Assembly: GCF_006345805.1 (NCBI RefSeq)
Contig: NW_021832227.1
Coordinates: forward strand, 310,001 to 374,000
Length of the DNA: 64,000 nucleotides
Source of the DNA: Octopus sinensis
Taxonomy: Eukaryota
Reading direction: 5' to 3'
The notes under the pieces are model-generated. The model saw only the letters and a list, made by a program, of their open reading frames with translations. It did no database searches and was not told the DNA's origin. Below, one piece after another: positions 5,315 through 45,414 of the stretch (positions within the stretch are counted from its first letter, which is position 1; every line of letters starts with the position of its first letter). Made by a program: the position numbers and the translations under genes.

Positions 5315-5790
5315 GACTGAAAGTCTGCTCCTTAGCTCCCTGGTAATCCCGGCCAGTACCTAACTGGTTCTTGGACAGAATTGGACATACAGGTAATCGA
5401 ACGATAATCTTTAGGAACGCAAATGTTATCTACTTTAGGAATCAAATAATTAACCCCAGTACGTAACCACTCTGGAATCGAGTCAGGATCAGGTGTAAAC
5501 TGTTCGATTGCTTGACAAATGCAGTCGTGGATTGGTTTCCAATTTTTTATAAAGAAATTATACATTTTATCAACCCCAGGTGTCTTCCAGTCAAAGAGAT
5601 GGACTACTGCCTCATTAAACTTGTTGTGGATGTCAGAGACGCCACAAATATCGGTCATCAAGGAAGCATCGGATCCACAAAACGGAAACGACACATCCTT
5701 GCGAGGACGTGTTTTCAACATACTCCCCCATGTGTCAAGCATTTTTGCCTTTTGCTGAGTACCCTCCTTCTTCTCTCCGTACAACCGCCG
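5315..5790 (-). mobile_element. R4/HERO-like RT N-terminal fragment
   Basis: WKTPGVDKMYNFFIK, PEWLRTGVNYLIPK, DYRSITCMSN, then KNQLGTGRDYQGAKEQ in a shifted frame. Abuts the CRE fragment at about 5310. Confidence 0.8.
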
Positions 5791-6339: not shown

Positions 6340-7470
6340 CTCTTTACCAGCCTGGGCAACCCGAATATTGACGTATCGTGGTCATGAACGTGGCTAATAT
6401 ATGGGAATAACGTTCCTCACACACAGCCTTGCGACTCTTTCCGCGTTGCGGTCGAAACACCTGAACCCCATAATGTCGTACCAATGACAGCATCCGCTTC
6501 GGAAGCCTCAGAGAACCTAAAGTTCTTCCGTCGCATTTCAACAGGATAAAATCGGGCCACATCTGTGATCTGATATACAGGGCTGTCGAGGAAAGTGCAC
6601 TAACCTGCTTGAAAAAATCGTTGGAAGCTTTAACATGCTCCTATCCAGCGAAATATACCCGTTTGTCCTAGAACTGGTCTTCTCTTCATGTTTAACGACA
6701 CTAAAGAAAACGAACAAAAAAGTCCGCTCGATCGCCATCAGGGACACTTTTCAAAGAATTGGCGCTGAAATAGAAAAGTCTACTTTAAGTCATCTGCATT
6801 TATTGTTGGAACATCCATAATCGAGTCTCCAAGTAGAGTTCAACAAATCGACTCTTTGGGGCCACTCCTATTCTTTACCGCAATCCACGAAACCGTAATA
6901 TCATATAAAACGGATTTTAACCCTTAATATTTAGCCGAAGGTGCAATTGGAGGAACCTCTGAAACCATCCTGGGAATGCTGGAAACACTTGTGTTAAATT
7001 TCTGAGCTCTCGGCTCAAATCCAACTGTGGGAAGTGGGAAATTGTAGACATCAACACAGATGAATTTATCTTACAAAAACTGTTTTCAGAATGGGACAAA
7101 CTGCTGCCTGAAAGGATTACCCCCTAAGGATGACTTGGTCTTTCCTGGATCCCCTATATTTGAGAATGGAGCCAAGGTTTCCAAATTCTCCCACCTTTTC
7201 GAAAAGATACGCTATGTCGACAGCCGCATTGGACTCTTTCTGCAGAGGAATTGCCTATCCATCCCAAAGCTAACCTATATGTTGAGAACGGCTAAGTGCT
7301 ATAAAAATCAGCTTAATAGAAGATTGCACTGAATGCCTTAAGACTATCTGCTTTGATACAAAGGCATAGATACAAGCCACTCTACCAGTCTCCCTTGGAG
7401 GCATCGGTCTGATTACCCCAACTGATTCAGCCACGGGGAGTACTTCTTCTCAGCGCTCTTGTCCACAGAA
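6340..7470 (+). mobile_element. CRE-clade remnant
   Basis: VRSIAIRDTFQRIGA, RVQQIDSLGPLLF, NCLSIPKLTYMLRT and QATLPVSLGGIG are degenerate versions of CRE RT and thumb motifs; many stops and frameshifts. Confidence 0.8.
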
Positions 7471-8517: not shown

Positions 8518-9474
8518 ATGGAACAAAATAATAAATCGACATACACAAAACAAAAATTGAACAATTCAGATCAAACCAATAATGGTCGACGTCCTGAATA
8601 TACAAACATATACACAAATCACGATTTCAACTCAAAAATACAGCAAAATCATTTTTATATAAATTCATCACGGGAGTTTGATGGAATTTCCAATAGAGAA
8701 AATTTGAATATGAAAAATTCTTCAGACACAAGATTTGAAGATGCAAGAATTAAAGGATGCAGCCCCAAAACTACTCCAGAAAAAATTGAAAAAAATCGAA
8801 TTAAGAGACCAATGAATTCTTTTATGGTTTGGTCAAGAGGACAGCGTAAGCAAATGTCCCAGGATAATCCCAAAATGCATAACTCTGAAATTTCAAAAAG
8901 GTTGGGATCTAAATGGAAAATGCTAACCGCAGAAGATAAAAAACCGTTTGTTGATGAGTCTAAGCGCCTAAGAACTCTTCATATAATGGAACATCCGGAC
9001 TATAAGTATCGGCCAAGAAGGAAAAATAAAAATAATGTTAAGAAAGACTGCCATTTGAATTTTGATACAGCTCAACAAGAAGTTTTACAACCTAGTTATC
9101 AAATTCCTATTAACTTCGGAGATGGATACTATGCAGATCCTAGCTATTTTATGAAAACTAATAACAATGAAAATTATAATCCGAATCAGTTCAATTATTC
9201 ACCATACACCAATTTTAGTAACGGCTTTCAAACTAATCAATTCACACCAAATGTCAACTCTATACTACAATATCAGCAAATACCAATGCAGAATTTGATT
9301 CATACATTAAACGGATCTGTAAATTCGGGAGTCAGACCGCAAATACCAGCCAGCTACGACTATTATAATGGAAATATTTCAAATTCCACAGGGAGTGGCG
9401 AACAAAATCACCAACTGCCGACTTATCGATTTCGAAACAATCTCAATTTTGTTGAAAAAACTGTATTTAAATGA
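8518..9474 (+). CDS. SoxB: Intronless SoxB-group HMG-box transcription factor, 318 aa
   Basis: HMG box [52 protein letters not shown] carries the SoxB-type RGQR and [14 protein letters not shown] signature; N/Q/Y-rich C-terminus. Confidence 0.93.
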
Positions 9475-10278
9475 TTGATTAAAAATAGTATCAACTAAAT
9501 AAACCATCCCAATGAAAGGATCCGTCTTTTTTCATTTAATGGTAGCTTTAGCATATTTTATTTGTACGAATTTTTTTAATAAAATTCGGAATTTAACTTA
9601 ATAATTAATTGAAAATCTGTTGTCATAAAACAACTGTTCACTACCAAAGCTTTGCATCGATAATAAAAAGGCACTGGTTAAAAAGTTGGACAAGCATTCT
9701 CTTAAATAACTTTGAATATGTACATAAGTTTAATTTAAAAATAATTTCAATTTATTTCTATAGAACATAATCTATAACATTTTTCCAGCATAAAAAAATA
9801 TTACTTTATTATTATTCCGGTGGAAACATGAAATTTTTCACAGTGTAAGTGCTATCTCGTAAATATTCTGTTAGACATATTTGACATTAAAATAAATTCC
9901 TTCAAAAATTGATTTCTTATATTTTTGTAACTTTTAAATTGAGAATTGCATTTTGTACTCAGTAAAGCTTTGGACGACATTAGACTTGGTACATACCAAA
10001 TGAATGCATTAAAATCTTTCAAATTTTTAAACTTCGTCAATTATGAATCGTCAATTATCGGTCTTAAAAATACCCAACACCAACCAGGCCATTTAAAACT
10101 TTATTCGAGTCTTCCGAAAGAATATATCTTGGTATTTTACTCATCCTACTTATTCTTAAAAATAATAAACTTAATTGATTAAAATAAATAATTGCTTAAA
10201 CAATCAGAGAATTAACTATATAAGAATTTACAAGTAATAAGAGAAGGCCCAATAACATTAAACCCAAAGTCCGCTAAT

Positions 10279-11790
10279 TTACAATTCAGAAGGGAGATCG
10301 TCCAAGATGACATCCGACAAGTCAATTTCCTCTTCATTTATTGGCTAAACAAATAGTCCCAAGAACGTTCTACCGGAGCATCCTGACCATCCCACGGAGT
10401 TGTCTCCTTGATTGTATATGTCCCGATAGAACTAGTCGACACTTTTCCCACCATAACTTGCCTAATAAATATAAAAAATAAACTAACCCAAGAATTCATT
10501 GATTCCAGTTTCGTCAAACCTTCCTTTGAGGACACTGAATCGATTTCGAATTCTGCTCACAATCACCATCGCCTAAACACAATCTTCAACTCCCGAATAA
10601 CCGGATATCCAAATCCTCCTATATCCAATGCAGCTTCCAGACTTGATTGAATACCTCCTTCCATCCACAGCCATCTGAATATTAATTAGACAAACCCATA
10701 TGAAATAGCTCGTGAGGAATCGGCAATTTTTTGTAAAAGATTTTGACTCTCGCGACGGCATTGTGAATTACAGTCAAGTAAGTGGGGTAAGAAAGAAATG
10801 ACACACAATGAACTACTACCGCATATATCATTCCAAACATTTTGAGATGTTAACTAGAAATAATTAAAATCTAAAAATATGACTTGAGTGAGTGTAGGAG
10901 GAGGTTTACTATTAGCGACTTGTTGTTCCGCCCAATTGACCATATCGTCCACAGATCGACTCCCTTCATAAGGAATGCCCTCAAATCCACCGGGCGGAAA
11001 AAATTTAAGTGTAGGAAACCCATTTATCTGAATAAGTAAATCGACAAACCGAGAAACGACTAGCAAGTTCTTTGTTGACAGTGGCATCGACTGCCGCAAC
11101 CGTAACTTTTCCTGCTAATCTGACTGCCACTTGTTCCCAAAGTGGCTCCAAGTTTTTACAGTGGCCACACCAGGGAGCATAAAATTCAACAAATGTGGGA
11201 TTGTTCCCTTTTAGTACAAACTGGTCAAATGAGCCATCACTGAGTTCTATTACTCTTCCATTAGACTAGAAATATAACAAATAAATCAACTTGTTCATTG
11301 TTATTTCCCGTTAATTTATCACGAGCATGTTTAGTCAAAAGTCTCATTACCTCTTCAACAATGGCAGAAGCAGAACGTTGGGCTATAATATGAATAATCA
11401 AATAAATACATGAAAACTGAATTTGTTCGTTGTTTAAAAATAAAACTATTGTAGGGAATCCTTTAATATTGTACATCTGCATAAGGTTTGGATTTTCATC
11501 ACTGTTTACAGCTCCTAATTTGACAATTCCCTAATAGATATTGAGAAAATTGAAACTTTCAAAGCAGTTGCTGCTTTTGCCCATTCTGGTGCCAAATTTT
11601 TGCAGTGACCGCACCTATGATTGTATAGTTTTATAATTTACCAGTCTGCGTAAAATTCAACCAGAACGGGAGATTTTGAACGAAATACAATATCGTCAAA
11701 ATTTTCTGAATTTAATTGTATTACATCGTTGGATTGAGAATATAAATTTGAAGAAATGAATTGGAATATAACAGAAAAGAAAAAAAACAT
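10279..11790 (-). CDS. PDIA6: Protein disulfide-isomerase A6 (P5), multi-exon
   Basis: Signal peptide [14 protein letters not shown], two WCGHC thioredoxin domains (FYADW|CGHC across a 27-nt intron; FYAPWCGHC), P5-type C-terminus [23 protein letters not shown]. Introns of 22, 26, 27 and 29 nt checked. Confidence 0.92.
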
Positions 11791-12317: not shown

Positions 12318-13200
12318 TTAATTCTTTGATTGAGAGGACGAACAAATAGACAGGCAGTTTCCGCGCAATATCGCGAGCCAGTTAGACTCACGTCTCTCGT
12401 GACTCTTCCTCGAGATCATCAAACCAATCTCCGAAAGGAACTCCAGGGCTTTTAGGCCGATTATCCCACTTGTCTCGAAAGCCAGGGAGACGAAAAACCA
12501 GGTGTTCTCCAATGAGGCGTACTTTGCGATTTTTTTTCGTTTCGGCATGTGCGGAGGCTGAGCCAGGGCGGGAAGGAGAGTCGATGAGAGATGACGAGGA
12601 AAACGAGTCGACACAGGTGACGTCCCAAACGAGAGCGAGTCCCCCTTGAACGGGAATAGCGTGGACCCATCGGGACATTTTCCGTTACCACGATCTAACC
12701 CAACCGGCTCCAGGACCGAAAGGAATCCAGCGGTGTTGAGCGCGTGCTTAGCAATATCATTCAAGGCGGCATGTCTGGGTATTCGGCCGGCACTGAGGCG
12801 ACAAGAGAGGGGATGTAGCCCTCTCCTGTCAATGACTTTTCCGCATCTGCACTGATGTGACTGGCAAATCTCGATCCCAAGGCGTAGACACAAACCAATG
12901 CGGACGGATTCGTTGTCCAGGAACATTCCAGAGAGGAAATCGGCAAAGCGTCAAACCAATCGGCCGAGTGGGGTTGACAGCCACAATTAATGCTTGCCAA
13001 CTGAAACTGGTCAGCACGTAGGCGGATATCCACAAGAACATGTAAACAATGTATTTCATCCCAGTTCTTTTGAACTGAGGGGACGTCCGGAATTTTAAGC
13101 CCACAAGAAATTTACATGTTGGCACCTGCCGCGTATTCCAATAACTTGGGCTGTTCAGAAAAGGGGAAGGGAACAAAGTTGACGAAATTAGAGGAAGCAG
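12318..13200 (-). mobile_element. CRE-clade 3' fragment (CCHC zinc knuckle plus RLE)
   Basis: CRCGKVIDRRGLHPLSC, RHAALNDI, EPVGLDRGNGKCPDG, LVWDVTCVD, LAFETSG; two or more frameshifts. Confidence 0.9.
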
Positions 13201-19047: not shown

Positions 19048-20330
19048 TTATTATTATTATTATTCAACAGAAAACCAGAAACTTTTGAAAAGATAAAAAA
19101 TTCTAAAAGTCATAGAAAAAACACATCTGCTTACCATTATGAATTTAGTTTTTTAAAAATACAACATTAGAAATGCGAAAGAATTAAAAAACTGAAGGAC
19201 ATTATGTATCTGCTAAACCAAATTGAAAAAAAGCCAACAATTGAGTATGAAAAGTCAGGGAAAAACTGGATTGGCGAGCATCAAATGAGACACTTTCCAG
19301 AATCCTCTTGAAAACATTTTACTGCATATAGAGACTGTAGAAACTTATCTCCACCCAGCTGTCTCAGTATCTCTTGTGGTATTTAGTGATCAGTCCATCC
19401 CATGTCATCACACACGAAATGAAATAGACTTTGCACTGGTGCATCAGCTCTAGCTCGTTTGCAAAGAGGTCATGCTTCCTCCTTTTCTCCACTTCCACTG
19501 TCTACAAACGATGTAGACATGTGATGCCCACTTCCACAATAACGATCTCTCCGGCAATCTTACCGTGAACAACAATATCGGGTTTTTTATGCTGGACAAC
19601 AATCGAGGTGCCTATGGGGTATTCATCATAATGCACACCTTTGAGGTCTCACACACCGATTGAACTCGATGGGTTCGCAACTTTCTGGACAACCTCAATC
19701 CATACTTATTGCAGAGCAGAAGATGGAGGGACCTCACCACCTCGTTATGCCTCCATGTGTAACTATTGTAAAGAATACTCCCACACTTCGTGTCTAAACG
19801 GTCAACGGTCATCGCCTTACTTTTACAGTGGTTACACTGTTTCCGTTGACCATTAAAAAAGTTTCTATCCTGCAAATATGAGAACAACCCTTCTGATCGG
19901 GGAGAGTTATTCCCATATTTCAGCCACGTTGATGACGTAAATGCGTCAATGTGCGGGTTGTCCAGACTATTAAAGAGAGTATTGTGAAGAACTTTTAAGT
20001 TGATCTCTTTTATTAGCAATTCCCTCCAGACCATACTTAGTCTACAAGTAGCCTTTTATGGTCCCTAGGTGTGTATCAGGGGTTTTTTCAACACCAAGGA
20101 TGGCAACCTTCCTTTGGAATACACTCTACCCACTCCACAAGATGTCATGCATCTTAGTAAGAATTCGCTTACTTAAGTGTGCGATGTTACTCAGTCCACG
20201 TCCTAGCTGCCCGTGAGACGAGTATAATCTCCCCTTATTGCTTGCCAACACGTGGACGTAATTCTCTCGGAGTACTTTTCGGACAATAAAGTCCATTTAA
20301 TCGTACTCACTCGCATCGAATTCAATCAGG
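19048..20330 (-). mobile_element. R4/HERO (Dong-like) RLE retrotransposon, 3' half ending at (TAA)6
   Basis: VSRQLGRGLS, GNNSPRSEGLFSYLQDRN, CNHCK..RHNEVVR, HKKPDIVV..IVEVGIT..EKRRKHDLFANEL..MTWDGLITKYH; then about 190 nt of non-coding sequence and a (TAA)6 tract at about 19048-19066. Confidence 0.88.
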
Positions 20331-20769: not shown

Positions 20770-21120
20770 AGAAGACCCTTTACCTAAAAGAAAAAGTCTT
20801 CATTTCTTCAGACGCTTGCCCTCGCTCCGGAAAAGGCTGATTTAGTCTAGAGTGGAAGGGAAACCAGCAACTTTAGAGTCCTTTTAACAATGTCATTAAG
20901 TTAAGTGTGGCGAGAAAGTCTACCAGGACTCTTTTTACACAACAAAGCATCGGCAAGTGTGGGGCTGGCAGATGTTCAACCCCAAGCAGATACCAGTCTG
21001 TAAGAATTCAGCGTCCAGTAGTAATATGATGCGGAGGATAAGGAGTGCTTTGAGCTTGTCTCCTGTATGCGGCTGACAAGTGCAGTTTGGTGAGGCCATC
21101 TAAAGTAGATCAGGCTTTAA
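20770..21120 (-). mobile_element. CRE-clade remnant
   Basis: LLDAEFLQTGICLGLNICQPHTCRC and LNDIVKRTLKVAGFPS..EGKR in broken frames. Confidence 0.7.
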
Positions 21121-21427
21121 GCAAAATTTGCGTAATTTATTTAAACAAAAAATTTTGTCCCAGATTCTTTGGACTAAAATAATCTTAGAGAAACTAACGA
21201 CAAGTGAGGACAAAACAAGACAGGCAGAGGAGTATTTTAAAAATTCGTCGAGTTCGAGGGAATTCATTTTTTAAAACGACAAACTCATTTTGCTTTTTTA
21301 TTAAAGTCAATCACTTTTTCCACTGCTGATAGTTTTAGATTCAGATTATTGAAATATAATAATAAAATCAATTCCCCAAAATTTTAAGTCATCCATTTCT
21401 TATTTTAACAATTAATATATATAGTCA

Positions 21428-21784
21428 TCCACCTTCCCATTCCGGAATGGCAATTTCCTGATCTGGGACGCCACGTGCGCAGACACGTGGTCCCCATCCG
21501 CTCTACTGTCATCTGCTTCTTCTTCCGGCTCGGTCGCGGCCCTGGCGGAAGCCCGCAAAGTAGAAAAGTACAAGAATCTTGCCACTCAGCATTCCTTCGT
21601 GCCTGTGGCTTTTGAGACATGAGGCGCTTCCGGTCCGCAGACCACATGCTTCTTAAAAGACCTCGGTATCCTCATCGCTCGGAAGAAGATGGATGCTCGC
21701 GAGTCCTCTTGGTTGTGGCAGAGGATCTCGCTCGCAATCGTGCGCGGGAACGCGCAAGCAATCCGTTCGGCTGGGTTAATTTAG
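21428..21784 (+). mobile_element. 5'-truncated CRE copy (RLE C-terminus)
   Basis: FPFRNGNFLIWDATCADT..EARKVEKYKNL..FVPVAFET*G..WLWQRISLAIVRGNA; one premature stop. Confidence 0.9.
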
Positions 21785-22731: not shown

Positions 22732-23040
22732 TTAATTTAGAATAGTCGTCGAACAAATGAACAGGAAATTTCTACGTAATATCACAAGCGATATCCGTTT
22801 AAAAAACCTGTTCTTTTTGCGACTGTGGTAAATCCTCGATATGAATAAACCAATCTCTGAGAGGAGTCTGAGAGCTTTTGGGACAATTATTCTACTGTTT
22901 TCGAAAGCCAGGGGGACGAAGCAACAAGTGTCGACCAAGAAAGTATAATTTGCGATTTTCTTAGTTTCAGCAATAGCTTTTTGATGCTACTGTTCTCAAA
23001 GTCGATGAAGGAGTGAGCCAACTTCTGTTTCTACTTCCTA
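22732..23040 (-). mobile_element. CRE 3' remnant
   Basis: AETKKIANY..FVPLAFENS..LLSEIGLFIS..KRISLVILRRN; similar to the 12318 copy. Confidence 0.8.
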
Positions 23041-24820: not shown

Positions 24821-25947
24821 TTATGAATGATGTGTTTTGGAACGACGAGGAATCAGTTTTGCTAGTAAAGCATTTGTTTTGCCCATAGAAATATAATAAC
24901 GCTGGACAAGTTCAAAAATAGTACCAGAAGACAAAAAATCAATCCAGTCAGAATTACACGTAAGCACAAGTCTTCCATCTTGTTGTAGAATATCATATGC
25001 TTTCGCGAGAAATCCATTAATGAAAGTTTCTGGATTGTAATCTTCAGGAATTTTAAAATTATGACCAAAGGGCAAATCGCATAATATCACATTGACGGAA
25101 TTTGACATTATCGGGGCGTTCATAAAATCCCATCGAACAAAATCTGCTTGTTTTTTATTATCAAAATTCGTGATTGCTTTATTAAGAGACTTACGACTTG
25201 AATCAGCTCCGATTAAAATCAGATTTTTGTTCAACGTTGAAGTCTCAAAAATGATAGATCCAACTCCACACATTGGATCGAGACAAATTTCTCCCTCGTT
25301 AAATTCAGCAAGCAAAGCCATTGCATGGCAAACAGTTGAGCGTAAACCACGAGGACCAGGACGCAGAGCCAAAGTACTACAATAGTCACGAAGTCCAAAG
25401 AGTAGATATTTGTCGGTATATTGCACGTATATCTCTATTTGAGGATTTCTCAGGTCTACAATCCAACCAAGCTCTACAAGTGAATTAGACACAATTTTGC
25501 TGGCGGTCTAAAATGATAGAAGATAATAAAACAGTGATTTCAATATACTGTCTGTATTTGGGCTTGCATTTAAACGAAACTCGAAAATGGACCGGAAAAA
25601 CAGGCGAAAAAAGAGCTGCATATTTTTGCCAGGTCTGTGAAGATACATTTTTCAAACGTGTTAATAGTCTGCGTTTCCCTACCACGTGAAATCAGCAATA
25701 AATACAATTACAAAAACTAAGTCTTGTTGAAGTGCTGTATAGAATGCTGCCCATCAATCTTTCGGCAACCTTTAATTTGCTAGCAATTATTTGAGGAGAT
25801 AGATCTGATGAAAAAAATACTTTTCCTTTGATGGCATCAAGCTGGTAGTATAATTACTTAATATACATTATATGCACATAATTTTGAGGATAGTTCGTTA
25901 CTCGAAATTTCTTCAAGACCTTTACTTACTGTGATGAAATATCTCAT
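24821..25947 (-). CDS. THUMPD2: THUMP-domain m2G methyltransferase, THUMPD2-type
   Basis: MRYFITVSKGLEE..|..KGKVFF..KLKVAERL (25-nt intron 25842-25866), FRVSFKC, WIVDLRNPQIEIY, GLRSTVCHAM, LDPMCGVG, IGADSS, CDLPFG. DLRNP and GAD favour THUMPD2 over THUMPD3. Confidence 0.8.
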
Positions 25948-26002
25948 AAAATGACACGAGACAATCTTATTTAATTTATAGAAAATATTTTTTTAATTAT
26001 TT

Positions 26003-29000
26003 AATTTTTTTGAATTTTTTTTTTTTGATAAAATATTAGTTTTTTTGGGCCAAGAAAAAAAAAATATCAGTTAATAAATTCGGAGAAGAGATTGATTTGA
26101 GAAATCAATTGAGGAAGCCCGCTGCCTGTATGGAAAGCGAGTTCCCTCGGAGTATGGCTATTCCGATCCTTTGTCTTAGCCATACTCCTTCACGAGGATC
26201 ATTCTTCTTTGTGGCGAGCATTCTTCCGAGTTCGCGCAAGAACTCGGCAGTCGCTGGGCCAACTGCTCCTGATGACTCAGCCGCAACAGGGGTGAATCTG
26301 TAGCGGTCCCCGAGGAAGGAATATTTTTTGGTTTTAAGGTTTTCCGCGATTGAGGCAGCTGCTCCAGGTGTCTGAACCGATTTAAGGAGATTCGTGCTTG
26401 AGTAAGTATCGACGCAAGTTGCGTCCCAGACCAAAGATCGTCCGGAGTTGAAAGGGAAAAGAGTCATCCCGTCAGGTCTCTTTCCATCACCTCGATCGAG
26501 ACCCACTGTTCAAGCTGTGCTGGGAAGCCTGCAGCCTTCAGAGCTCTGACGATCACGTCGTTCAGAGCGGCGTGACGTGGTCCTCTTCCGGCGGATCTCC
26601 TGCAGGATAGCGGGTGCAATCCCTTCGCATCGACCGTTTTCCCGCAGCGGCATCGGTGCTCCTGGCAAACGTCTAGTCCAAGTCTTTGTCCGATTCCAAT
26701 CCTCAAAGAATCGTCGTCCAAAAAAGTCCCGAGATTTGGGCAAGGGATTGCACCAAGCCATGCTCCGCTCCCTCCACTTGAGGCTGACACCAGGCAAGCA
26801 AGACGATGTTGATTTGCTTCTTTTTTAAGCCCTTCTGAAATTTTGGAGCAGACAATGTTATCCCAGTTCCTTTGTTTCGTTGTGTCTTCGGGGATTTTGA
26901 GTCCTGACCCGTTCCAATCCCGGCAAGCTTCATCAAATGACTCATTCCAGCGAAGTCCAATAGTGTGACGAAGGACTTGCCGTGTCAAATGGTTGCAGCT
27001 TGAGAGAGACGAAAGATATGCCGGGTACGCGACCTCCAGCGCCGATCTTAGACCGACACCCCCAAATCCAGAGGGAAGCTTACATTGCTTCCAACCGAGT
27101 TCGTCGAAGCGGACGTTGATTAGTGACTCAACAGTTTGTTTGAGAGATTTGTCTATCGAAAGTAGACTGTCGTAATGTTCGTGGCAGGGTGAACTTCGCA
27201 GTAGGTATAAAAGCTTGGGTAGTCCGATGTTGTTTCTCATCAGGAAGAAGGATGTGTGAGAGTCGAGGCATGACAATCTTTTTGCGAGGCGAGATAATTC
27301 TTCATTTTTAGAAAGTAGATGGTTCCTGAGTTCGTCTTCACTGAGTGGACATCCAAGGAAATATAGTTTATCAACTGGCACAGTCGGGATCCCGGGAAGC
27401 AGTTCGTTGAAAAACTCCTTGATAGAGAGAAAGTCGGTGTTTGAGTATGAGACATTTATTAACTCTGATTTGTTAATATTGATGTCCAATCCCAAGTGTT
27501 TTAATGCGGGAAGTGCTTGACGTAAAGAATTGTATGTTTCCTCGAATGATCCTCCAATTGTGGCATCGTCGAGATACCAGAGATTTAGTTGTGCGTCAAT
27601 TGATCTCACAACATCATCAATTGTCAGGGCAAATAAGAGGGGTCCGAGCGGATCTCCCTGCTGGACACCAGTTTTTGATTTAATGATTTCATCATCAAAA
27701 ACCAGAGACGTATCTTCTCCGTATGACAATTTAACAAGAGGGAAAAGCATGGGAGCCCTCTTCCAACACGTTTCCATAATGGAGTCTCTTCTGAGAGAAT
27801 TGAATGCATTGGTTATGTCCAATTTGATTCCAATGCATTCGTTTGCAGTATTCTTCTGTGTGAAGAAACGCCTTGCTGCATGAACCGCTGCCTCACATCC
27901 GTTCTGGATACTAACACCCATTTGTTCTGGGAAGAACTCCGCACCGAGTGGGCGGCTCACGAGGGTCGAAGCAATCTTCGCTGCGAGTCTTCTGAAATAG
28001 TTTCCGACCGCAATGGGGCGGATTCCTCCGTTGGGTTTTTTGAACGCGAGTAGCCTTGCGGAGAAGAGCAATTCTCTGGCATACTCCGGGATGTCGCCAT
28101 TCACCATTTTCCTTATTAGGTCCGTGATCGATTTAACAAGACAGCGTCCTGCTTCCGAGGTGTAGGTGGACGTTAGGTCCTTGATATGGCCGGGGCGTAA
28201 CCCATCCAAGCCTCCGCTGCTGCTAGCGGCAAAAGAAGCGATTCCGTGCCGCACTTCTGATTCGGTAATCATAATCTCTTGGGTTCCTTCAGGATTCGAG
28301 AACTTTACATAATCACTCGGTGCACTTGGGTGCTTCTGAATTAAGGTATTCAGGACCTCGGGGGTGCTAGACAGCACGGTGTCATCGGACGTGATAACCC
28401 GTAGGGCTGCCCGCACATCGCCCTCCAGAAGTTTCCGATTCACTCGCTCCTTCAGTTTGTTGGGGGCATCTTTGGTGAATGCTCCTCTGGTTTTGACCGC
28501 ATTGGCAATAAGTGGCTGTTCAAGTATTGCGTGTATGCTATGACTGCCGAAATTCAATATGCTTCCTTTCAGTTTCCCGGTTAAGTTTAGCCGGGGGTTT
28601 GTTTCTTTACTCTGGTTATCAGATTCCGTTGTAGGTGTTCCGAGTGCAACAGATGCGAAGCATATAAGTTTTAGCCAGGATTCCCAGCTGTCAGAGGACA
28701 GTGCGTTGTCAATGAGGTCTGAAAGGCACGTTGCTGCGGCAATACGTGCTCCTTTTGGGATTTTTACTGGGATTTTCCTGGCTTTCCGGAGGTTCGAGAT
28801 CTTCAAGAGAATGTGGTCAGTATGTGGTGATGTAAAGTTTGGCTGAGCTGTTGTTTCCCGCCTGGGGACCTCGTTTCCAATACAAGAGGGGCACTGCCAG
28901 CTTGACAGCGTCTCGGCGCAGGCTTTGCTCATTTTTATGCAGCCCAAATGGGCGAATGATTCACATGGCGTGCAGTTAATTCCAAATTTCCTGATATTCG

Positions 29001-29137
29001 ACTGCCCACAAAAGAGACATGCCCGAGTTGTCCTCAGTGGCTTTGTTCCTCGTACTTCGTCTTCGCTTCGTTCTTTATTTACCATCTGAGGTTTCCGTTA
29101 ATCACACCACAGCACACTTTTAAAATTTTTTTGAATT
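26003..29137 (-). mobile_element. Full-length CRE-clade retrotransposon: PHD-RT-CCHC-RLE, 14-bp TSD, poly(A)
   Basis: Identical aatttttttgaatt at 26003-26016 and 29124-29137; T-run to 26026 is the poly(A); ORF 29085-26105 broken only by a 1-bp deletion near 26509. C4HC3 PHD, QQGDPLGP, YLDD, CRC..H..SC, RPDG..WD..K.KY. Confidence 0.95.
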
Positions 29138-29477
29138 AAAGAAAAAAAGGGGTTTAAAAAAGTTTTGGAATGTTTGACAAAGCGTTGCTTCAATAATGGA
29201 ATGAAGATTTTTTGAAACACCTAAGAGTTTTCCCTAAGTTTTTTACTTTTCTTTGAAAGTCAACACTAAAAAATTTCCGAAATGAAATATGAGCCAAGTT
29301 AAGTAGAAATTTTAGTCTGAAAACATTGTACAGCGTAAAATATTAAAAAATATGAATAATCGCAGCTGCCTAAATAAAGATTTTCAGAATTTTATCATTA
29401 CATATTGTCACTTACACGTCTTTACTAAAATCAAAACACAGTGAAAAAACCAAATTAGTGTAACCAAGAAAGAATTA

Positions 29478-30769
29478 TTAGTTTTCCTGATTAGCATCGG
29501 CTACCCACAAACCAGAATCAACACACCTCTTCATGTGGTATTCTGCCTCATCAGGGTTCATAGAAGATATGACAGACTTTAACATCTCGACATCACGCGA
29601 TTCAAAACAACTTTGCAGAGCCTTAAATATAATAAAACTTAACACAACAGGTGGCAAAGTCTCAAAAACTTCTGCCGGGTCAAGTCCTCCTGGTCCAAGC
29701 ATTTCTCCCTTCTCAAGAACTCTCTCTTCGATAATTTCCTCCTCTGCTTCTTCCCGTCTTTCTAAAGCACGTTTTCGAATTCTGGCTCTAAAGGCTATCA
29801 ACTCATCGTCAAAAGATTTTTTGTAGACTTTTAAGCTTTTATCATTACTCACGTTGTCGTATCTCGTAATATTTCACAAATAATCAAACCGTTGGAAAAA
29901 CGGGCCAGCACATGAGCGCGGATCTCGCTTCAACTGAGTAGCCAATTGAAGAATAAACTGAAGGACGATCACTTGATGAGAAACGTGGTCTAACAAGTCG
30001 AATTTCTATGTTTAAAAAAATGTCCCTACTTCGTCCATTGCCAAATCAATGCACCAAATCACTAGCAAACTGCAAGCTTCGTCACAAATGAGGTGCGTGT
30101 TTTCTCTTAGAAATTCCCTGCTGTCGTTCGAACGACGAAGAAAGCCAAATTTCTTTACAAGTGGCATGTAATTTTCTTTGAAACTTTTCTGAAAGAGTAA
30201 AGAAAACTTATTTACAAGGCTCTCAGCTTTCTCTTCGTCTGTTTGTTGTTTAGGAATATATTCCTCCACAGAAGAAAATACCTAAATTTATAGGACTGAT
30301 AATAGCTACCGTTCTGGATGTTTTTTCCTTATTAATCGTGTCGACATTGAGAGGAGTTTTCTTCTTTTCGACGTCTAATTCGGCCTGTCTTTTGGCTAGA
30401 TCTTCTCCTTGTATTTTCAGTTCTTCAAATTTATTTTGCATCTTTTCTCTCTCCTAAAAAATCCAAAAAACGAATATTGCCTGACAGTCGGAAACAGATT
30501 CGATTTTATCCTTTAATTCAGCCAGTTTCTCTTTATGCCTGTCATTTTATCAACTATTACGACTTTACTTTTTGGTTTCGGTAGCAAGCTTCTGTTCCTT
30601 TATTTTCTGTTCTTCCATTCTCTCGAGCCTGGCTCGATGCCTCCATCTAAAGAGACTTGGAGTATCTATGTTTGGATGTGTGTCATCTTCATCATCGGAT
30701 ATCTTATTTTTACATTATTTGATCTATTACTTCTATGTTATTCCATTTAGAATAGTCAATATTTGACAT
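29478..30769 (-). CDS. CDC37: Hsp90 co-chaperone Cdc37
   Basis: [13 protein letters not shown]|[22 protein letters not shown] across a 28-nt intron; LVIWCIDL; [28 protein letters not shown]. Confidence 0.95.
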
Positions 30770-31179: not shown

Positions 31180-32617
31180 CAGTGGTTCCCAACCTTAAGG
31201 TGCTCGCGGAACCCTTTTGGGCTAATTTATTTTTTGCGGAACCCCTCCAATTCAATTATTATAATTTCACTTAAAACATAATAGTAATAACCAAAAACAA
31301 TTTTAATGTGAACATTGAGGTAATTTTTTATCATAGCATAGTTGCGTAACGTTAGGAGTTATTGTTGACAACTGTATCCTCATATCAGCGGAAGCATTGA
31401 GTTTATTTCTATATTTTGTTTTGGTGGATGTATATATTGAAAACCCAGGCTCGCATAAGTAAGTCGTTGGAAAAGGTAATAGTTTACGTATAGCCTTTTC
31501 TGAGATATCTGGATATTTTGAAATGTATCCCCTCCAAAAATTAAAAAGGGATTCATTTTTATATAACTGATATGACGCTGATTCTGATGTCAAATCAATA
31601 AGATGTTCATATTCAATTGATGTTAGATTTGCTGGTATTACTTTAACTTTGAATGGGTTTTGAACCCAATCGTCATCAAATTTACCCGGAAAATATTTCG
31701 CAATGTTATCGTCCAAAATCATCAAATGATCTTTGATGTCCTGAAGAACTGTATTGTCCAATGATGATTTTGATTCTTCGAGATACTCTTGTATCGAAAG
31801 GGTATCGAACGAAAACCAATAAAACTGCCAATCCTTCAACATCAGTAGATTCATCAATTTGAATAGCGAAACCATTCGAATTATTCAAACGAATTAGTAA
31901 CTGTGTTTCAATATTTTCCGAAAATTCCTGAATTCGCCTTGAAATAGTATTATTTGACAAAGGAACAAGATCCAGTTTCTTAAACATTTGTTCGCCATAA
32001 ATACACTCGATGATTTTTTTTGAACACGGCTTTATAAGATTTTCGGCAATTGTATGTGCCTCTCCACAACGTGCTACAAGATAACTCACCTGTTTGATTA
32101 AAATAATTATATACTTCATAAGATGCTCTGGTCGATTTTAAATTGTCGTCTTTCGCAAAATTGGACATTTCCAACTTGCACCTTGTAGATGCATTTAATT
32201 TGTTTTGAAAAAAGAAAATATCTTTATCCTTTAAATGAGGATGCTTCATCAATAAATGTCTTAATAGTTTGGCAGAAGAAGAGATGTGTTAGATATTATA
32301 TGATGGCGTATTACACATTCTGCCGTATGTGGTAAATCAGATCCATTCTGAGAAAACCCATATGAGAGGTAGCTTTCATCATATTTTTTTTCTAAAATTA
32401 TAATTATAAAAAAACCTTTTTTGAATATTTTTTGAAATCTCTTATGCAATTATTGTTTCTCATTAAAAATCTTATAAAATTGACCAACTAACTCAAAAGA
32501 GAAACAAGATATAAGCGTGGATGTTTAATATATTTTAATAATTAAAAACTATTATTAAATAAATATAATAAATTTCGCGGAACCCCAAAACTGGCTCCGC
32601 GGAACCCCAGGGTTCAC
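31180..32617 (-). mobile_element. hAT Buster-type (ZBED5/SCAND3-like) DNA transposon, internally deleted, one end lost
   Basis: Terminus cagtggttcccaacc at 31180 preceded by accTAgat; subterminal gcggaaccc repeats at both ends; GEAHTIAENLIKP, LSNNTISRRI, FAIQIDESTD, LLPFPTTYLCEPGFS. Right TIR cut off at the adjacent retroposon. Confidence 0.92.
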
Positions 32618-32625: not shown

Positions 32626-33130
32626 GCGATTTATTTTATTTATTTATTAATGACCAAGAGACCAGGGTAAGCCAGTAAATTATAATCCCCGTGAATCCCC
32701 GATCCTTTTGAAAGGTTCGATCTTGCCCACGTGATCGGACTGAGACGACAATGTCCCAGGGTCAGAGTTCTAGAAGTCCTTTTTCGGTAGGCATTAAGTG
32801 CCTCCTGAGCGTTTTCATATCTGATTGAAAATTATAACTGACATGGTGGACCCCATAATGCCACGCTAAGACCGGAAAGAAGGTAAGAGATGATTCAATT
32901 TAGGTTTGGGTAATGAGGACGTTGATTCAATGTAAATTTGATTGCGTCAATTTTAGCTTTGCTGGAAATGTAATCTCATTCCCATTGGCGTAAAATGTTG
33001 GATAGAATGGCCAAAAGTTCACAATCTCAAGAGATAACCCGGTCCTCTTCCAATCCGGAGGAGTAACGTAGGATTTGGGTAATGAGGACGTGGAAATTGG
33101 CGCTTGAGAAGAAAAAAGTTAGGGAGGGTC
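32626..33130 (-). mobile_element. 3' end of unclassified retroposon with (TAAA)n tail
   Basis: About 240 bp homologous to 34405-34655 (shared tttttcggtaggcattaagtgcctcctgagcgtt and actgacatggtggacccc); tail at about 32630-32648. Confidence 0.6.
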
Positions 33131-33149
33131 ATGTCTAGCGGCGAACGTA

Positions 33150-34380
33150 GTCTAACTCCACCAAAACGTAGAGGTAATTTGCACCAAGTCTATTTACCAT
33201 CATCAAAGCATATGTTTAGAATTTTTTAGCGGCCAATTTCAGAGAAGTATCGAGCAATTGAAGCATGTCAGATTGTATTGAGCAGTTTGATGTTCGCAGC
33301 AAGTATAGGAGTCCTGGAAACATAATCTTTACTCAAAAATCCGTAGTGAGTATCAGGCAACATGAGTTTATTTGTAAAATCAGTCACCCATGGGCGCGCC
33401 AAGGAAAAAACATAATCAATGGGTGTGGTTGTCAGTTTCGGTCGAACAAGATATATTTATAAGCTTGCACTTGCTGACGTTTACTCCCAGTCCGATTTCG
33501 CAATCGGCTTTTCGTACGGCGTAGATCGAGAGAGTCGCACTGCTTAACTCCTGTGCACGATTTAATGATTTCATTTCCAAAAAGGAGAGAGCTGTCTGAT
33601 CCGTATGCCAAGTGAACCAAGCCGATATTATCGGGGGCCTTTCCATGCAGGCTTTGAGGATCATATCTCTTCTCAGGCTGTTAATTGAATTCTTAATGTC
33701 TAGTTTTATAGCTAAAATTCCCGGATCATTTGAGTTTCTTTTTTACGAAAAGAATTCTCTGGTTGCATGAACATAAATCCATTTAGAATTTCCATACCCA
33801 GCTGAAGTGGCGAGAGTTGCAGCTGAATCTCTGTGATGCCCTCCGTGAAGTGATTTTGGCAGCAGGTCTTCTGAGAACGTTTCCAATAGCAATAGGACGT
33901 ATCCCACCGTCTTTTTTGTCGAAGGCAAGGAGATGGACACTAAAAAGGAGCTCCCTAGCGGTCAATGGAATGTCCCCTTCGATTATGCGGTGGACTAAAG
34001 CAGTAAGCGCTCCAGCCAGAGACCGGCCAGCCTCATGGGCGGAGGCCGAAACCAAGTCCTTTAGATGGCTAGGACGCAAGCCGTCGAAACCACCGCTGTG
34101 CCCCATTGAAAGAAGAAATGCATGCGAGGATCTCCTCCAGAAGTACTTTCACATCCAGCGAGGATTTTATGAAGTGGAACGGCCACACATTTTCGGGGCC
34201 GATGGGTGCTTGCGCTTGAGTAGATCCAAGGTGTCGTCGGCAATATTGTGCCGTCATTGGAGATAACCCGGAGTGCTCCCCGGAGGTCCCTCACCATGAA
34301 TTTATGAAAAACTTCTTCTCTGACCAACTCCTTTTCATCTCGCAACAGTGGGTGGACAAGTTCGTCTTGCGGATCAGGCT
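33150..34380 (-). mobile_element. CRE-clade RT fragment
   Basis: SGGFDGLRPSHLKDL, LLAFDKKDGGIRPIAIGNVLRR, GVKQCDSL, GVNVSKCKLIN. Confidence 0.88.
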
Positions 34381-35291: not shown

Positions 35292-36950
35292 CAGTCCGAC
35301 CTCTAAATGGGGCACTAAGTGCCTCAAATCAGAGGTTTCCCCAAAAAAGAGGTTTTTCAAAAAGCTCAATAAATAAAGAAAAAGAACATTATTTTTAAAA
35401 TAATCAGTTAATTTTTCTCCATATTTATATTTATTTTTAATTCCTAACGACACTTTCTTTCTGAATTCATAAAAATCATGAAGAGAATCTGGAATCAAAT
35501 CAAAGATGTTTGTCTCTAAGTTTTCCATCAAACTTAAAATTTGTGATATTGATGTTCGCAGCTTATATTCTCATAGATATTTGGATCATTATCTTCTATT
35601 TCATCAAAACATTTATCAATAACATTATTAAATATTTCTTCAGATGATTCATTTATGCAACTCGAGTCTGATGGAGATTGTCGAAAAACCTTTTGCCAGC
35701 AGTTATAAATAATATCCGCAGATACATTATTCCAAGCATCTGAGATTATTGTTACCACTTGCCGCAAATTTAATTTGGATAAAGACTCTATAAACAAATC
35801 CTGGTCGTCTTGAAAACATAAAAAATCAATTAGACAATTCAAATAATTATCCTTGAAATTTTTAATGATTCCAGCATCCAATGGTTGAAGTATTGGTGTC
35901 GTATTTTTTGGTAAAAATAAAAAATCAACGTTGCTAAATGTCGATATTTTGTGGCAAGCAGCGTTATCTAATAACATTAAGATTTTTCTTTTTTGAATAA
36001 TCATTTTTTCATTAATTTTTTTGAGCCAGGATATAAAAATGTCTCTTGTCATCCACGCATTTTTGGACGAAGAGTATAAAATTCCATAAATTTCGGGAGA
36101 AAATTTTTGAAACATCTAGGATTTCTATATTTTCCGATTATTAATGGTTCAAATTTTTCTCCAGTGTAACTACAGCATAGATGAAGAGTAACTTTATCTT
36201 TACTCCTTTTAAAGCCCCGTGCCGAATCACCAGTTTTCACGAATGATTTACATGGGGTAAGTTTGATAAAAAGAGAAGTTTCGTCACAATTAAAAATGTT
36301 CTCCTTTCCATATTGTTCAACTTTGATATTTAATTCTGATAAAAAATTGAAAATTATCGCATGATCAGCAGATGCGGATTCGCCTGACAATGTTCGGAAT
36401 TTTAATTCATGCCTCTGCTTGAATTTTTCTAACCATCCATTTGAAGCTTTAAACTTGTTTAAGCCCATTCTCGAAGAAACAGTTAGGGAAATTTTTTTTA
36501 AAAGAGTTCCAGAAACTGGAACATTCTGATCCCTTAGACGCTGAAAAATATCAAGGACTTTTTCATCAGATCCGTTTTTATTTTCACTTAATGATGAGGA
36601 AAGAAATCCTTTTTTGATAAATGGAAGAATATTCTTTTTTATACGAAAAATAGTTCCCTTGCTAGTATTGTACATTATGGATAATCTCCTCTCAGAATGT
36701 TCTTTCTTTAAAAGATGATCAGCAATCTTCAACTTGGTTTCATAATTCAAAGGCATTACACAAGAAATTTGAAATGAAACGTGTCTTAAAATATTAATTT
36801 TTTAAATTGGTATAATTAATTTTATTTAATAAAAAATCAATGCCCCAAATAGAGATGTTAAAATTAATTGATTTTTTATAATTTGGTTAAAAAAATTTAT
36901 AATGCCCCAAAACAGAGTTTTCCCCAAAAAAGAGGTGCGTTATCCTGATA
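35292..36950 (-). mobile_element. Tigger/pogo-like DNA transposon, near-complete transposase with one frameshift
   Basis: TA|cagtccgacctc terminus at 35292; HTH FKASNGWLEKFKQRH; DDE region IFNCDETSLF, NAWMT, LLDNAACH, QPLDAGII; frame switch near 36100; right TIR degenerate. Confidence 0.92.
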
Positions 36951-40456: not shown

Positions 40457-42424
40457 TCATTCAAAAAACTTTTTTATATTCAACACGTCAGATTCCAAAC
40501 AATGCATTTGATTCTTAGATTTTTTTATCTTAACTAAAAAATTATTATTGTCAACCTTTAGAGGAAGATTTGGAGAGGTTTTTTTATTTAAGTGGTTAAT
40601 TTCTGAAGTATTTTTTCTTTCTGATTCTAATTCTTCGACTGCTTTCAGCTTTAAAAAGTTGTTTAAAACTAAGTTATAATTAATAATAAGAACAGTTCTT
40701 TGAATTGATTCTCTTTTCATTGGCCTTTTTTCTTTGAACTGCCACACATTTTGACAAGCAATGCTTTACACCTAACAAATTTTTATATTTGGAATTTGGA
40801 AGACGAGAGCAAGCGTTAATTCCATAGTAATCGAGAATAGATAAACCAATTTCTTTACCAATCTGTACAATCAATAAAATTCATTTTTTTACTTGACTGA
40901 AATCATTTTTTGTAAATTTCTGTCCCATTATTAGCGGAAATTCGTTTGATATGCGATTTGTGTTATAATTGCATTCGAATGTATAACTACGTACTATTCC
41001 AATGGACTGATAAAGTGACACTCGTCCAGATCCCTGTCGAGATTGACCTCTTCCATCGCTACAGTTCATCATACGCTCAGAGAAATTACAGCTTTCCATG
41101 TCAAAATAAGGACAATTTATTGATATAAGTTTTGCCAACAACATGTTATCAATCTATAATTTGAATAATACTTTAAAACCTGTGTTTTTTCATCTTTAAA
41201 ATAATTTCCATATAAAAAGCAGCCTCGTTTCGATACGTGACCATGAAAGTCTATGTAGAAAGCTATTCCACTTTCATTAGACGAAATAGTTAATAGCTCG
41301 GGATGATTTAGATCGTCACTCGATTGAAGAAATTCGTCCATTTCATTATCATCTTGATATTGTGGAAAAACTTTGTTTAATAATTTTGAAACACTTAATT
41401 TTGATAAAGATGAATTTGCAATGTGATGATATATCGCAAGACTTTTTACAGAGTAAATTGATGGATGAATGAGAGGGTCGGGATTATTGTAAACTCTGTT
41501 CAAATTTGACCCCAAGCAATCCATTCTATAATTTCCAACTAAAATTCCATCGGGATTAAGCATTGGCACAATTTTAAACACAAACTCCTTGCGTAGTCTG
41601 GCAGCATTTTTATCGTTTGATAACAAAAATCGTACAAGACCTAAGAGAACAAGGCTCCCCGGGGTTTCTCCGGGATGCACCCGGGCACTTAGAAGAATCA
41701 CTTTTTTATTGAAAGCTGCGCATCGGGGAATTTTATTATCAAAAATTCTGCAATTGAATCTTTTTTCTTTTTCTTTTTTGAAACCATTTTGTCCACTTAT
41801 TGTAATTAAGTCAACATTATTCCCTCCAAGTGAATAACAGAGAACTTCTCTGTGAAAGTAAATAGATGGATGTTTTGAGTATAATTCTTGTAATCGAGCA
41901 AAAAATGTTTGGTCATCTTCGTAGGTCCATGGATATGTAAATGCAAATTCAGTTGAAGAACTAAACTCTTCGGGAAATGTATAAGTAAAATATAACGAAA
42001 ATCCTTCTTTGCTCGGCTAAAAATGAAATATAATAAATATAGATTTATACTTCAAAATCTACATTTGATTGAATTCTTTCCCACGTAGATTTGCATGGTA
42101 GATTACGCACCATCGGTACATGACCAAGCTGAAATAATTTTTTTTGATTTTGCATATTCATAATTTTAAGAGAAATTTTCTGCAGTGGCTGATAACAACT
42201 TACAGAAAAATAAAACCAGGTTCTTTTTTAATCTTTTAAAGCTAAATATACCTATTATTTGTTTCAAATGGAGTCCCTTCACAGTCTTTGTTGAGCCACA
42301 ATGCAAAATAATGAGTTTGATTATTCAAACTATCGTCTTCCGTATGATTTAGGAACTCGACTTTCTTCAAGTTCCCAGATTGTATTTTTGAAGAAAATTT
42401 CAAGCCTTCGCAAATAGTTTCCAT
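40457..42424 (-). CDS. AGBL5: Cytosolic carboxypeptidase 5 (tubulin deglutamylase)
   Basis: METICEGLKFSSKIQSGNL start; SARVHPGETP, PMLNPDG, NLNRVY, ESGIAFYIDFHGHVSKRGCFLYGN, CNFSER..GSGRV..SYTFECNYNT. Zinc ligands HxxE and H intact. Confidence 0.92.
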
Positions 42425-44449: not shown

Positions 44450-45414
44450 GCTTTCGAATTTCCTTAGCGGAAGGAGAGGGCGTGTATGCCTGAATGGAAT
44501 CATATCAATCTCAAGATTGCTCCCAAATGATGTTCCCCAAGGCTCCCCCTTTTTCCTGCTCTATTCAATTTATACCTATCCGGCATTCCTAATCCTGAAA
44601 TGGAAAACTCGATCATTTTCGCCTACGCCGACGATCTACTCATTGGATCACGTGATCAAGACTTCTCGAAAGCTGCCAAAAGAGCACAAGATCTCTTGTT
44701 ACAAATTCAAACTTGGCTATATCAAAACAGGATGGCATCTCCCCCGAAAAATCATCCATTACTCTATTTACGTCGGACAAGAGACTCGGAAGATGTACCT
44801 TTGATCTTTTTTCTGGACAACGAAAAGATCCCATTCACGAAGAACCCTAAAATTCTGGGGGTCACTTTTGACACCCACATGTGTTTTACTGCCCATCTAG
44901 AGAAGGCCACCGGATCCAGTCAGAAAAAGATTAAACTAATCAAATCGATATTTGGCGTACTAAAGAAACCGTTCCCGGATCCCGACACTCTTTACAAACA
45001 ATTCATCGAACCGACAATTGGCTATGCCTGCGCCGCATGGAATACTAATCTCTCATGGTCTAACCGCCTTAAAATTGAGACTACACTATGCCGAGCCGTG
45101 CCGAGCATAACGAAAATTTCCAATTTGAACAACATTATTCCAACTCCGCTTGACCACCTAATTAAGAAAGACGGAAAGGGCTTCTTTGCCATTCAACAGG
45201 ACCACCTGCCAAAAGACCAAGACCTTAGCAACCAGAAGCACATCACCCCGATTCAATTCCTCACAAAAACTGCTCTCCGCCCGTCTCACACCTGCGTTGG
45301 GTCCAGAGTCCAACATCGGGAAAACCTGAGAAAGATCTTGAGGATTGTTGGAATCACCTAATTAATTACCCTAATTAACTGTTGGTGATTCTTGGGTTAA
45401 AATAAATAAATAAA
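44450..45414 (+). mobile_element. jockey/I-like LINE, 3' RT portion with (AATA)n tail
   Basis: VPQGSP, AYADDL, KILGVTFD, LYKQFIEPTIGYACAAW; tail aataaataaataaa at 45401-45414. Confidence 0.88.

Follow-up and report, generated by a model that had tools for sequence, protein, structure and literature searches.

A near-intact CRE-group retrotransposon of Octopus sinensis that carries a PHD finger at its N-terminus

Long interspersed nuclear elements (LINEs) with a restriction-like endonuclease (RLE) are the textbook site-specific retrotransposons, and one of them, R2, is now engineered for gene insertion; the setting of their target by N-terminal modules is therefore a live question. The stretch of Octopus sinensis DNA analysed here, hereafter the window (64,000 nucleotides; contig NW_021832227.1, positions 310,001 to 374,000), puts that question in a particular form, as it contains a full-length element of the CRE group whose open reading frame (ORF) begins with a PHD finger. 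What does such a finger do at the head of a retrotransposon, and does it select insertion sites by chromatin mark rather than by sequence, as an initial annotation of the window had proposed? The analysis suggests that the copy is probably a very recent, full-length insertion of the CRE-II type, disabled by a single base, in which the PHD finger acts as a tether and insertion is dispersed and weakly sequence-selective.

The element lies on the minus strand and consists of the following parts, given in positions of the window.

26017-29123, minus strand: the whole copy of the non-long-terminal-repeat retrotransposon, 3,107 bp, bounded by a target-site duplication (TSD)
29124-29137: TSD copy at the 5' end of the element, reading AATTTTTTTGAATT on the plus strand
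26003-26016: TSD copy beyond the poly(A), AATTTTTTTGAATT
29086-29123, minus strand: 5' leader, 38 nt
26509-29085, minus strand: first part of the ORF, codons 1-859, from the initiating Met to ...PAQLE
26507-26509, minus strand: frameshift site, where the Pro codon of LE-P-VGLD is short by one base
26105-26509, minus strand: second part of the ORF, 134 codons and the stop codon (26105-26107)
26027-26104, minus strand: 3' untranslated region (UTR), 78 nt
26017-26026, minus strand: A10 tail

The TSD is 14 bp long and free of mismatches, and identity stops at both of its ends. Within the window its 14-mer occurs only twice, both times flanking the element; identical 14-mers at the same spacing were found at one of 60,865 window positions, and a shared 14-mer of any kind appeared in 6 of 20,000 shuffled flank pairs. 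The TSD, the poly(A), the 38-nt leader and the 3' UTR of about 78 nt were thus all located where the initial annotation had placed them. The G+C content of the element is 47.9%, against 32.7% in its flanks. Because the TSD is perfect, the tail is a pure A10, no stop interrupts some 993 codons, and the G+C content lies 15 points above that of the surrounding DNA, the insertion appears to be recent. Neither the 5' leader (z = +1.2) nor the 3' UTR (z = -0.4) folds better than shuffled sequence.

The copy had been described as complete and young, with a single ORF of about 1000 codons. Its full length and its apparent youth were borne out, but the ORF is not intact. From the start codon at 29085, the listed ORF extends to 26464 (873 aa); beyond the frame change, however, it is out of frame. 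Here the relatives all have ...LEP(V/P)GLDRGDGKRPDG..., and an older fragment at 12318-12926 of the window likewise reads LEP(V/P)GLDRGDGKRPDG, so that the octopus copy must have lost one base of the Pro codon. The frame-corrected ORF of about 993 codons contains no in-frame stop. An exact-protein look-up of the element ORF returned no record.

Four domains follow one another in this frame, in the order PHD finger, reverse transcriptase (RT), CCHC knuckle and RLE, each of which is backed by a hidden Markov model (HMM), a motif or a predicted fold.

28882-29019, minus strand: PHD finger, residues 23-68, C4HC3 with the conserved Trp63, assigned by Pfam, by its match to solved PHD fingers and by fold
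28732-28764, minus strand: conserved N-terminal motif KIPKGARIAAA (R-I/V-P-K-G-A-R in the family), with a predicted helix before it
27427-28041, minus strand: RT domain, residues 349-553, Pfam RVT_1 (PF00078 type), E = 6.8e-18
27559-27579, minus strand: RT active-site motif WYLDDAT
26602-26652, minus strand: CCHC knuckle, CRCGKTVDAKGLHPLSC
26321-26580, minus strand: RLE core of the PD-(D/E)XK type, PRHAALND...QLE...GKRPDG...WDATCVD...AENLKTKKY

The identity of the N-terminal finger, which the initial annotation had read from the spacing of its cysteines, is upheld by HMM, by sequence comparison with solved structures and by predicted fold. Residues 23-68 have the form CLFC-x11-CTPC-x4-H-x2-C-x15-CPSC, and Trp63 stands two residues ahead of the seventh Cys, as in the PHD pattern. 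Against a cut-off of 24, Pfam PF00628 gives the 80-aa N-terminus on its own 26.1 bits and the whole 873-aa ORF 21.5 bits; scores among the relatives reach 34.3 bits. Across 33 aligned N-termini of the family, the sole invariant columns are C23, C26, C38, C41, H46, C49, W63, C65 and C68. When the N-terminal 80 residues were compared with solved PHD fingers, the best match was Alfin-like 3 (AL3; E = 1.3e-5). An AlphaFold2 model of the finger has a predicted local distance difference test score (pLDDT) of 94-97 across residues 21-70, and in a Foldseek search of the PDB with this model, the top 45 matches were all PHD fingers (best 5yc3, E = 5e-5). The list is led by AL3 with histone H3 dimethylated at lysine 4 (H3K4me2) and AL1 with the trimethylated form (H3K4me3), followed by BPTF, PPS, PHF8, TAF3 and Pygo; the CFP1 finger is also among the best sequence or fold matches. 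Relative to these H3K4me2/3 readers, the model shows target-normalised TM-scores of 0.77-0.81 and root-mean-square deviations of 1.3-2.0 Å, with 36% identity to AL1 and AL3, and the Alfin-like, BPTF, TAF3 and PHF8 fingers share its fold, the spacing of its C4HC3 ligands and the Trp that precedes the final Cys pair. An interpretation of the finger as RING or RING-CH was rejected, as no such HMM scores meaningfully and the strong sequence and fold matches are all PHD fingers.

At the other end of the protein, the endonuclease is identified by its motifs and by the predicted structure of a relative. In a family profile, the CCHC and RH...E...(K/R)PD motifs fall in register with residues 933-997 of R2Bm (E = 0.026). 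Furthermore, in a Foldseek search with the predicted C-terminus of a relative (pLDDT 88), R2 proteins took the first six places (E = 3.6e-5 to 1e-3), below which come Hjc, lambda exonuclease and cap-snatching PD-(D/E)XK nucleases. Pfam gave no match in the element ORF to Exo_endo_phos, the apurinic/apyrimidinic endonuclease-type nuclease, nor to Myb or C2H2 domains.

The initial annotation had assigned the element to the CRE group. For the placement of its RT, the window ORF was compared with R2, R8, R9, R4/Dong, SLACS, CZAR, CRE1, CRE2, Cre-1_BM, Cre-1_HM, HERO, NeSL and Utopia, taken from the supplementary FASTA of PMC5678591 (file S5B), which spans the RT to the CCHC knuckle. By BLASTP, the best match was Cre-1_BM (365 bits, 36.7% identity over 564 aa), followed by SLACS (107 bits), CRE2 (89), CZAR (84), CRE1 and Cre-1_HM (74 each); the other clades gave 66 bits at most for R2 (R2Dm), 47 for NeSL, 45 for Utopia, 37 for Dong, 31 for HERO and 25 for R4. 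In a neighbour-joining tree (535 columns, Poisson distance, 300 bootstraps), the window element, 16 homologues and Cre-1_BM grouped together in 300/300 replicates, and this group joined SLACS, CZAR, CRE1, CRE2 and Cre-1_HM in 300/300, with all other clades outside. The RT active site agrees, being AYLDDVT in SLACS, CZAR and CRE2, AYIDDIT in CRE1, WYLDDGT in Cre-1_BM and WYLDDAT in the octopus copy, while the reference alignment shows (Y/F)ADD for R2, NeSL and Utopia; this signature was read off that alignment and is not a formal clade definition. The BLASTP ranking, the tree and the YLDD site together show that the CRE label is correct, and the RLE fold agrees with it. Membership in R2, R4/Dong, NeSL/Utopia or HERO is excluded by the BLASTP ranking and the 300/300 CRE grouping. 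Judged by its sequence, the element belongs to the animal, Cre-1_BM-like branch of the group, called CRE-II in RepeatMasker-style headers; CRE-II elements are already present in Repbase.

Two comparisons within the group define what sets the octopus element apart. Cre-1_BM, from the moth Bombyx mori, shares with it the motifs GGLDGL, GGIRPIAVG, GCEAAVHAAR, LWYLDD and CxCG...H..LSC, yet is only about 37% identical and therefore represents a different family; the published alignment begins at the RT, which places the N-terminus of Cre-1_BM outside the comparison. The lepidopteran members of the clade that were retrieved (Cydia, Tuta) have a C2H2 finger where the octopus element has its PHD. SLACS, CZAR, CRE1 and CRE2, the next-best RT matches (74-107 bits, 24-27% identity), fall in the same 300/300 super-clade and share the YLDD motif, a single ORF with RT and RLE, and an A-rich tail. 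These classical trypanosomatid elements are site-specific, occupying one fixed position in the spliced-leader RNA genes, and bear one or two simple zinc-finger motifs (PMC12278014). The octopus element, in contrast, lies outside any RNA gene and has a PHD finger at its N-terminus.

The PHD finger is a family trait common to hundreds of related elements, and not a peculiarity of the octopus copy. More than 1,900 homologues of the element were found, none above 49% identity and many of them from marine metagenomes, and the same PHD finger is present in 47 of the best 120. The family consensus reads C..C...N.RK....C..C....HL[ST]C[VA].[LI]T..Q[AS]......W.C..C, and a profile of the N-terminal module, run against 1.84 billion representative proteins, detects 505 clusters at E <= 1e-10. 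Some homologues that seem to be without a PHD are 5'-truncated gene calls. The finger thus appears to be ancestral to a large sub-lineage of CRE-II elements and conserved within it. The closest relative on a long contig, P0009 (locus L001, 48% identity, on a 2.66-Mb contig of ERZ21736675), has its PHD finger upstream of the called gene, at L001 3583-3750, with a frame break between the two, so that the database protein hides the PHD; no TSD was definable for this relative.

Transposons have captured PHD fingers repeatedly, as is shown by PHD domains in the ORF1 proteins of CR1-like LINEs, in Rehavkus DNA transposons and in Chlamys Penelope-like elements (PMC8557442, with reference to Kapitonov and Jurka 2003). 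In those unrelated classes, the PHD resides in a separate ORF1 protein or inside the RT or endonuclease, whereas in the octopus element it heads a single RT-RLE polyprotein. A search of the literature, Repbase and Dfam lying outside its scope, found no paper on PHD fingers in CRE elements or in any other LINE of the RLE type; within that scope, the suspicion in the initial annotation that PHD-bearing CRE elements are undescribed was supported.

Given that its nearest structural neighbours are histone readers, can the element's finger be expected to read H3K4 methylation? We take the cage positions of BPTF to be Y10, Y17, Y23 and W32 (numbering after PDB 2F6J). The equivalent residues in the octopus copy are A, S, G and F, and among 48 family fingers aromatic residues occur in only 1, 3, 3 and 16, respectively. 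The family residues are T/S/V, V/S/I and T/G/A/S/R at the equivalents of Y10, Y17 and Y23, and the equivalent of W32 is non-aromatic in the remaining 32 of the 48. In addition, the core of the finger is strongly basic, its net charge ranging from +2 to +9 across the family (mean +5.1) compared with -1 to +1 for the Alfin-like readers by the same count, and it carries a conserved N-x-R-K-[K/R] loop that looks like a nucleic-acid-binding or nuclear-import patch. H3K4me3 reading by the element's PHD is therefore unlikely, and binding of some other chromatin feature is possible. Together, the basic finger, the lack of a conserved cage and the N-x-R-K-[K/R] loop favour a general tether over an H3K4me3 reader, and tethering to nucleic acid or to the nucleosome is most likely its role. 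The proposal of the initial annotation that sites are chosen by chromatin mark proved to rest on analogy: with the cage positions unconserved, the finger basic, and other CRE-II copies lying away from gene starts, targeting of this kind is possible but unsupported.

A mechanism consistent with these features can be drawn by analogy with target-primed reverse transcription by R2, the steps of which are summarised in PMC13580325. R2 and the octopus element have the same order of RT, CCHC knuckle and PD-(D/E)XK nuclease, but the RT match is weak (E = 1e-8), the clade is different, and the octopus element is without the Myb/C2H2 N-terminal domains, the 28S ribosomal DNA target and a detected HDV-like ribozyme. 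By this analogy, the C-terminal nuclease would nick one strand, here at ...GAATT^AAAG in an A/T-rich spacer, the RT would copy the element RNA from the 3'-OH of the nick, beginning at the A-rich tail, and a second nick in the opposite strand 14 bp away would give rise to the 14-bp TSD. The PHD finger, in the place of the C2H2 or other fingers of relatives, would provide general tethering, either to nucleic acid or to the nucleosome surface, and perhaps also a nuclear-import patch; the outcome would be dispersed, weakly sequence-selective insertion instead of one fixed target gene. The element is probably transcribed from a very compact internal promoter or by read-through from a host gene, the latter fitting its sense orientation downstream of Cdc37.

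The tails of some relatives differ from the plain A10 of the octopus copy. In L002 (about 4040-4060), L003 (about 10518-10545) and L009, the element ends in A8-9 followed by (TAA)2-5, which suggests that these tails are templated or made by slippage.

The insertion site itself bears on the role of the finger. Upstream of the element is the last exon of a Cdc37 gene (Pfam CDC37_C), with its stop at 29478; downstream is exon 1 of a THUMP/UPF0020 methyltransferase gene, with its ATG at 25947 (MRYFITVSKGLEE...). Both genes and the element are on the minus strand, and without the element, the Cdc37 stop and the THUMP ATG would be about 400 bp apart. The DNA from the Cdc37 stop to the insertion point is free of AATAAA and ATTAAA hexamers; the first ones come after that point, 20-45 nt upstream of the THUMP ATG. 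As the hexamers are found only past the insertion point, the site can be taken either for the promoter or 5' region of the THUMP gene or for the 3' UTR of Cdc37, and the two may overlap. The initial annotation had placed the copy 56 bp upstream of the THUMPD2 ATG, in probable promoter chromatin. The distance and the THUMP-domain methyltransferase gene stand, but the gene may be THUMPD2 or THUMPD3 (a homologue search with this exon gave no match), and the promoter setting applies no better than the Cdc37 3' UTR.

No RNA gene was detected at the site. Rfam gave no family at gathering score in the whole window and none at E <= 1 in 25900-29500, with no match to an HDV-like or other ribozyme, spliced-leader RNA, small nuclear RNA or ribosomal RNA in the window, the element or its flanks, and no tRNA genes were found in the window. 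The loci of five relatives likewise contained no RNA gene of any Rfam family, and the 3' flanks of the metagenome relatives had no shared sequence. The spliced-leader site specificity of the trypanosomatid CRE type was rejected for the octopus copy, as there is no Rfam or tRNA match and the element is flanked by two unique genes, those for Cdc37 and the THUMP-domain methyltransferase. A trans-spliced operon of Cdc37 and the THUMP gene was also considered and dropped, as the host is an octopus and no spliced-leader RNA was found; operons are not known from molluscs.

The alternative that survives best, although it is unlikely, is that the PHD reads H3K4me2/3, a signature of active promoters on the H3 tail, and thereby brings the endonuclease to promoter chromatin, where a promoter-less element would then be driven by the host. 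The best sequence and fold matches of the finger were mostly solved with H3K4me2/3 peptides, the octopus copy has Phe at the cage Trp, where 16 of 48 members have W, F or Y, and the 38-nt leader is too short for a large internal promoter. Moreover, with a genome size of a few gigabases, a young copy lying 56 bp upstream of an ATG in the same orientation would be unlikely by chance. The equivalents of Y10, Y17 and Y23, however, are rarely aromatic, that of W32 is non-aromatic in two thirds of the family, and the positive charge of the finger should disfavour the basic H3 tail. The site lies equally downstream of the Cdc37 stop, with no polyadenylation-type hexamer before the insertion point, and the argument from position rests on one insertion. 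Three other O. sinensis CRE-II copies were located, none of them near a host gene start and two of the three without an annotated gene within 10 kb; they weigh only weakly on the question, because they belong to other families and are 5'-truncated. The lone young copy near two gene ends is therefore suggestive but anecdotal.

A broader form of the same idea, in which the PHD is a true chromatin reader of histone state or of the nucleosome surface at gene ends or promoters and so directs the endonuclease, is rather doubtful. If it were true, promoter-less elements would be co-transcribed with host genes, the family would be a LINE counterpart of the chromodomain-guided LTR retrotransposons, and an RLE LINE would have been naturally retargeted by exchange of its N-terminus for a PHD, a C2H2 finger or a nuclear-receptor DNA-binding domain.

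Several points weigh against the interpretation of the copy as a recent, one-base-disabled CRE-II insertion with a tethering PHD. The closest solved PHD fingers are H3K4me2/3 readers, and with Phe kept at the cage Trp position, histone binding by the octopus copy is conceivable; positive charge is an indirect argument for binding to nucleic acid. The target preference and the age are drawn from one examined copy of the family, and the frameshift could be an assembly error instead of a real deletion of one base. By sequence alone, the RLE profile matches R2Bm weakly, and the clade tree is a distance tree on 535 columns.

An alternative that leaves the choice of site to the nuclease is that the PHD is a protein-interaction or regulatory module, which might, for example, engage the host ubiquitin, SUMO or silencing machinery and protect the protein or the ribonucleoprotein. 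We consider this distinctly improbable, but it draws on the variety of modules found in the clade. Two relatives, P0065 and P0011, have two PHDs and a C-terminal UCH/USP deubiquitinase (residues about 1172-1500) after the endonuclease, L005 has a separate UCH ORF at 9233-10615, downstream of the element ORF, and P0105 combines an N-terminal OTU protease with a C2H2 finger. NeSL elements are known for their Ulp1 protease, and no description of deubiquitinases in CRE elements was found. PHD and RING fingers share the cross-brace zinc fold, and the element's finger gives a weak match to zf-RING_16 (E = 0.47). In P0086 (residues 13-80, E = 4e-15) and P0093 (residues 3-71, E = 3e-8), a nuclear-receptor zf-C4 domain precedes the PHD; it looks like the DNA-binding domain of a host transcription factor captured by a LINE, and with both modules in the same relatives, the PHD is not the sole possible targeting module. 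Conversely, no RING or RING-CH model scores meaningfully, the PHD is located where R2-type elements have their DNA-binding fingers, and most PHD-bearing members, the octopus copy included, have no deubiquitinase.

It is highly unlikely that the PHD has taken on sequence-specific DNA binding in an element confined to a short A/T-rich recognition sequence, for although a basic finger stands in for the C2H2 fingers of the lepidopteran relatives and classical CRE elements are site-specific (PMC12278014), the TSD 14-mer is found nowhere else in the window, neither the window nor the surroundings of the relatives showed a repeated RNA gene or a shared flank, and related fragments lie at many unrelated sites.

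What the octopus element reveals is a large and mostly unannotated animal branch of the CRE group with a PHD at the position of the targeting module. In some clade members from soil metagenomes, a CxxC...HGHG...CPGS finger is present, and the C2H2 finger, the nuclear-receptor DNA-binding domain and the deubiquitinases of close relatives amount to natural module swapping on one RT-RLE chassis. Should the PHD guide integration via chromatin, it would represent a new targeting principle for LINEs; should it merely bind nucleic acid, this would be an unusual use of the PHD fold. The near-intact copy between two housekeeping genes provides a concrete sequence for binding and retrotransposition tests.

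The window also holds at least eight degraded CRE-II-like fragments of related but different families, with 25-64% amino acid identity to the intact copy.

3897-5301, minus strand: CRE-II-like fragment
6781-7308, plus strand: CRE-II-like fragment
12345-13102, minus strand: CRE-II-like fragment
20871-21171, minus strand: CRE-II-like fragment
21434-21781, plus strand: CRE-II-like fragment
22735-22977, minus strand: CRE-II-like fragment
33112-34342, minus strand: CRE-II-like fragment
56570-57760, minus strand: CRE-II-like fragment

Further fragments of this kind are present in three other octopus loci, and the CRE-II-like superfamily is abundant and dispersed in the O. sinensis genome.

Other mobile elements have left remnants in the same stretch. 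The ORF fragments at 5332-5784 and 19612-20034, both on the minus strand, belong to another RLE LINE and look to be of the Dong/R4 type, one reading ...WKTPGVDKMYNFF...PKDYRSITCM and the other showing a CxxC...H...C knuckle with RHNEVV after it. The remnants at 35534-36756 (minus), 31303-32119 (minus), 61285-61656 (plus), 44600-45361 (plus) and 62172-62618 (minus) comprise pogo/Tigger-like DDE transposase ORFs as well as hAT-like ORFs, together with two RT fragments from LINEs of another type. At 8518-9474, on the plus strand, there is an intronless, Asn-rich ORF of 318 aa with a Sox-type HMG box, for which an exact-protein look-up returned no record. Positions 31117-52161 agree at 100% identity over 21,045 bp with O. 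sinensis contig VCDQ01001820.1 (GCA_006345805.1), on which the window occupies about 310001-374000. Finally, within this segment, an exon at 41117-41701 belongs to an annotated cytosolic carboxypeptidase-like protein 5 and is 99% identical to the O. sinensis protein.

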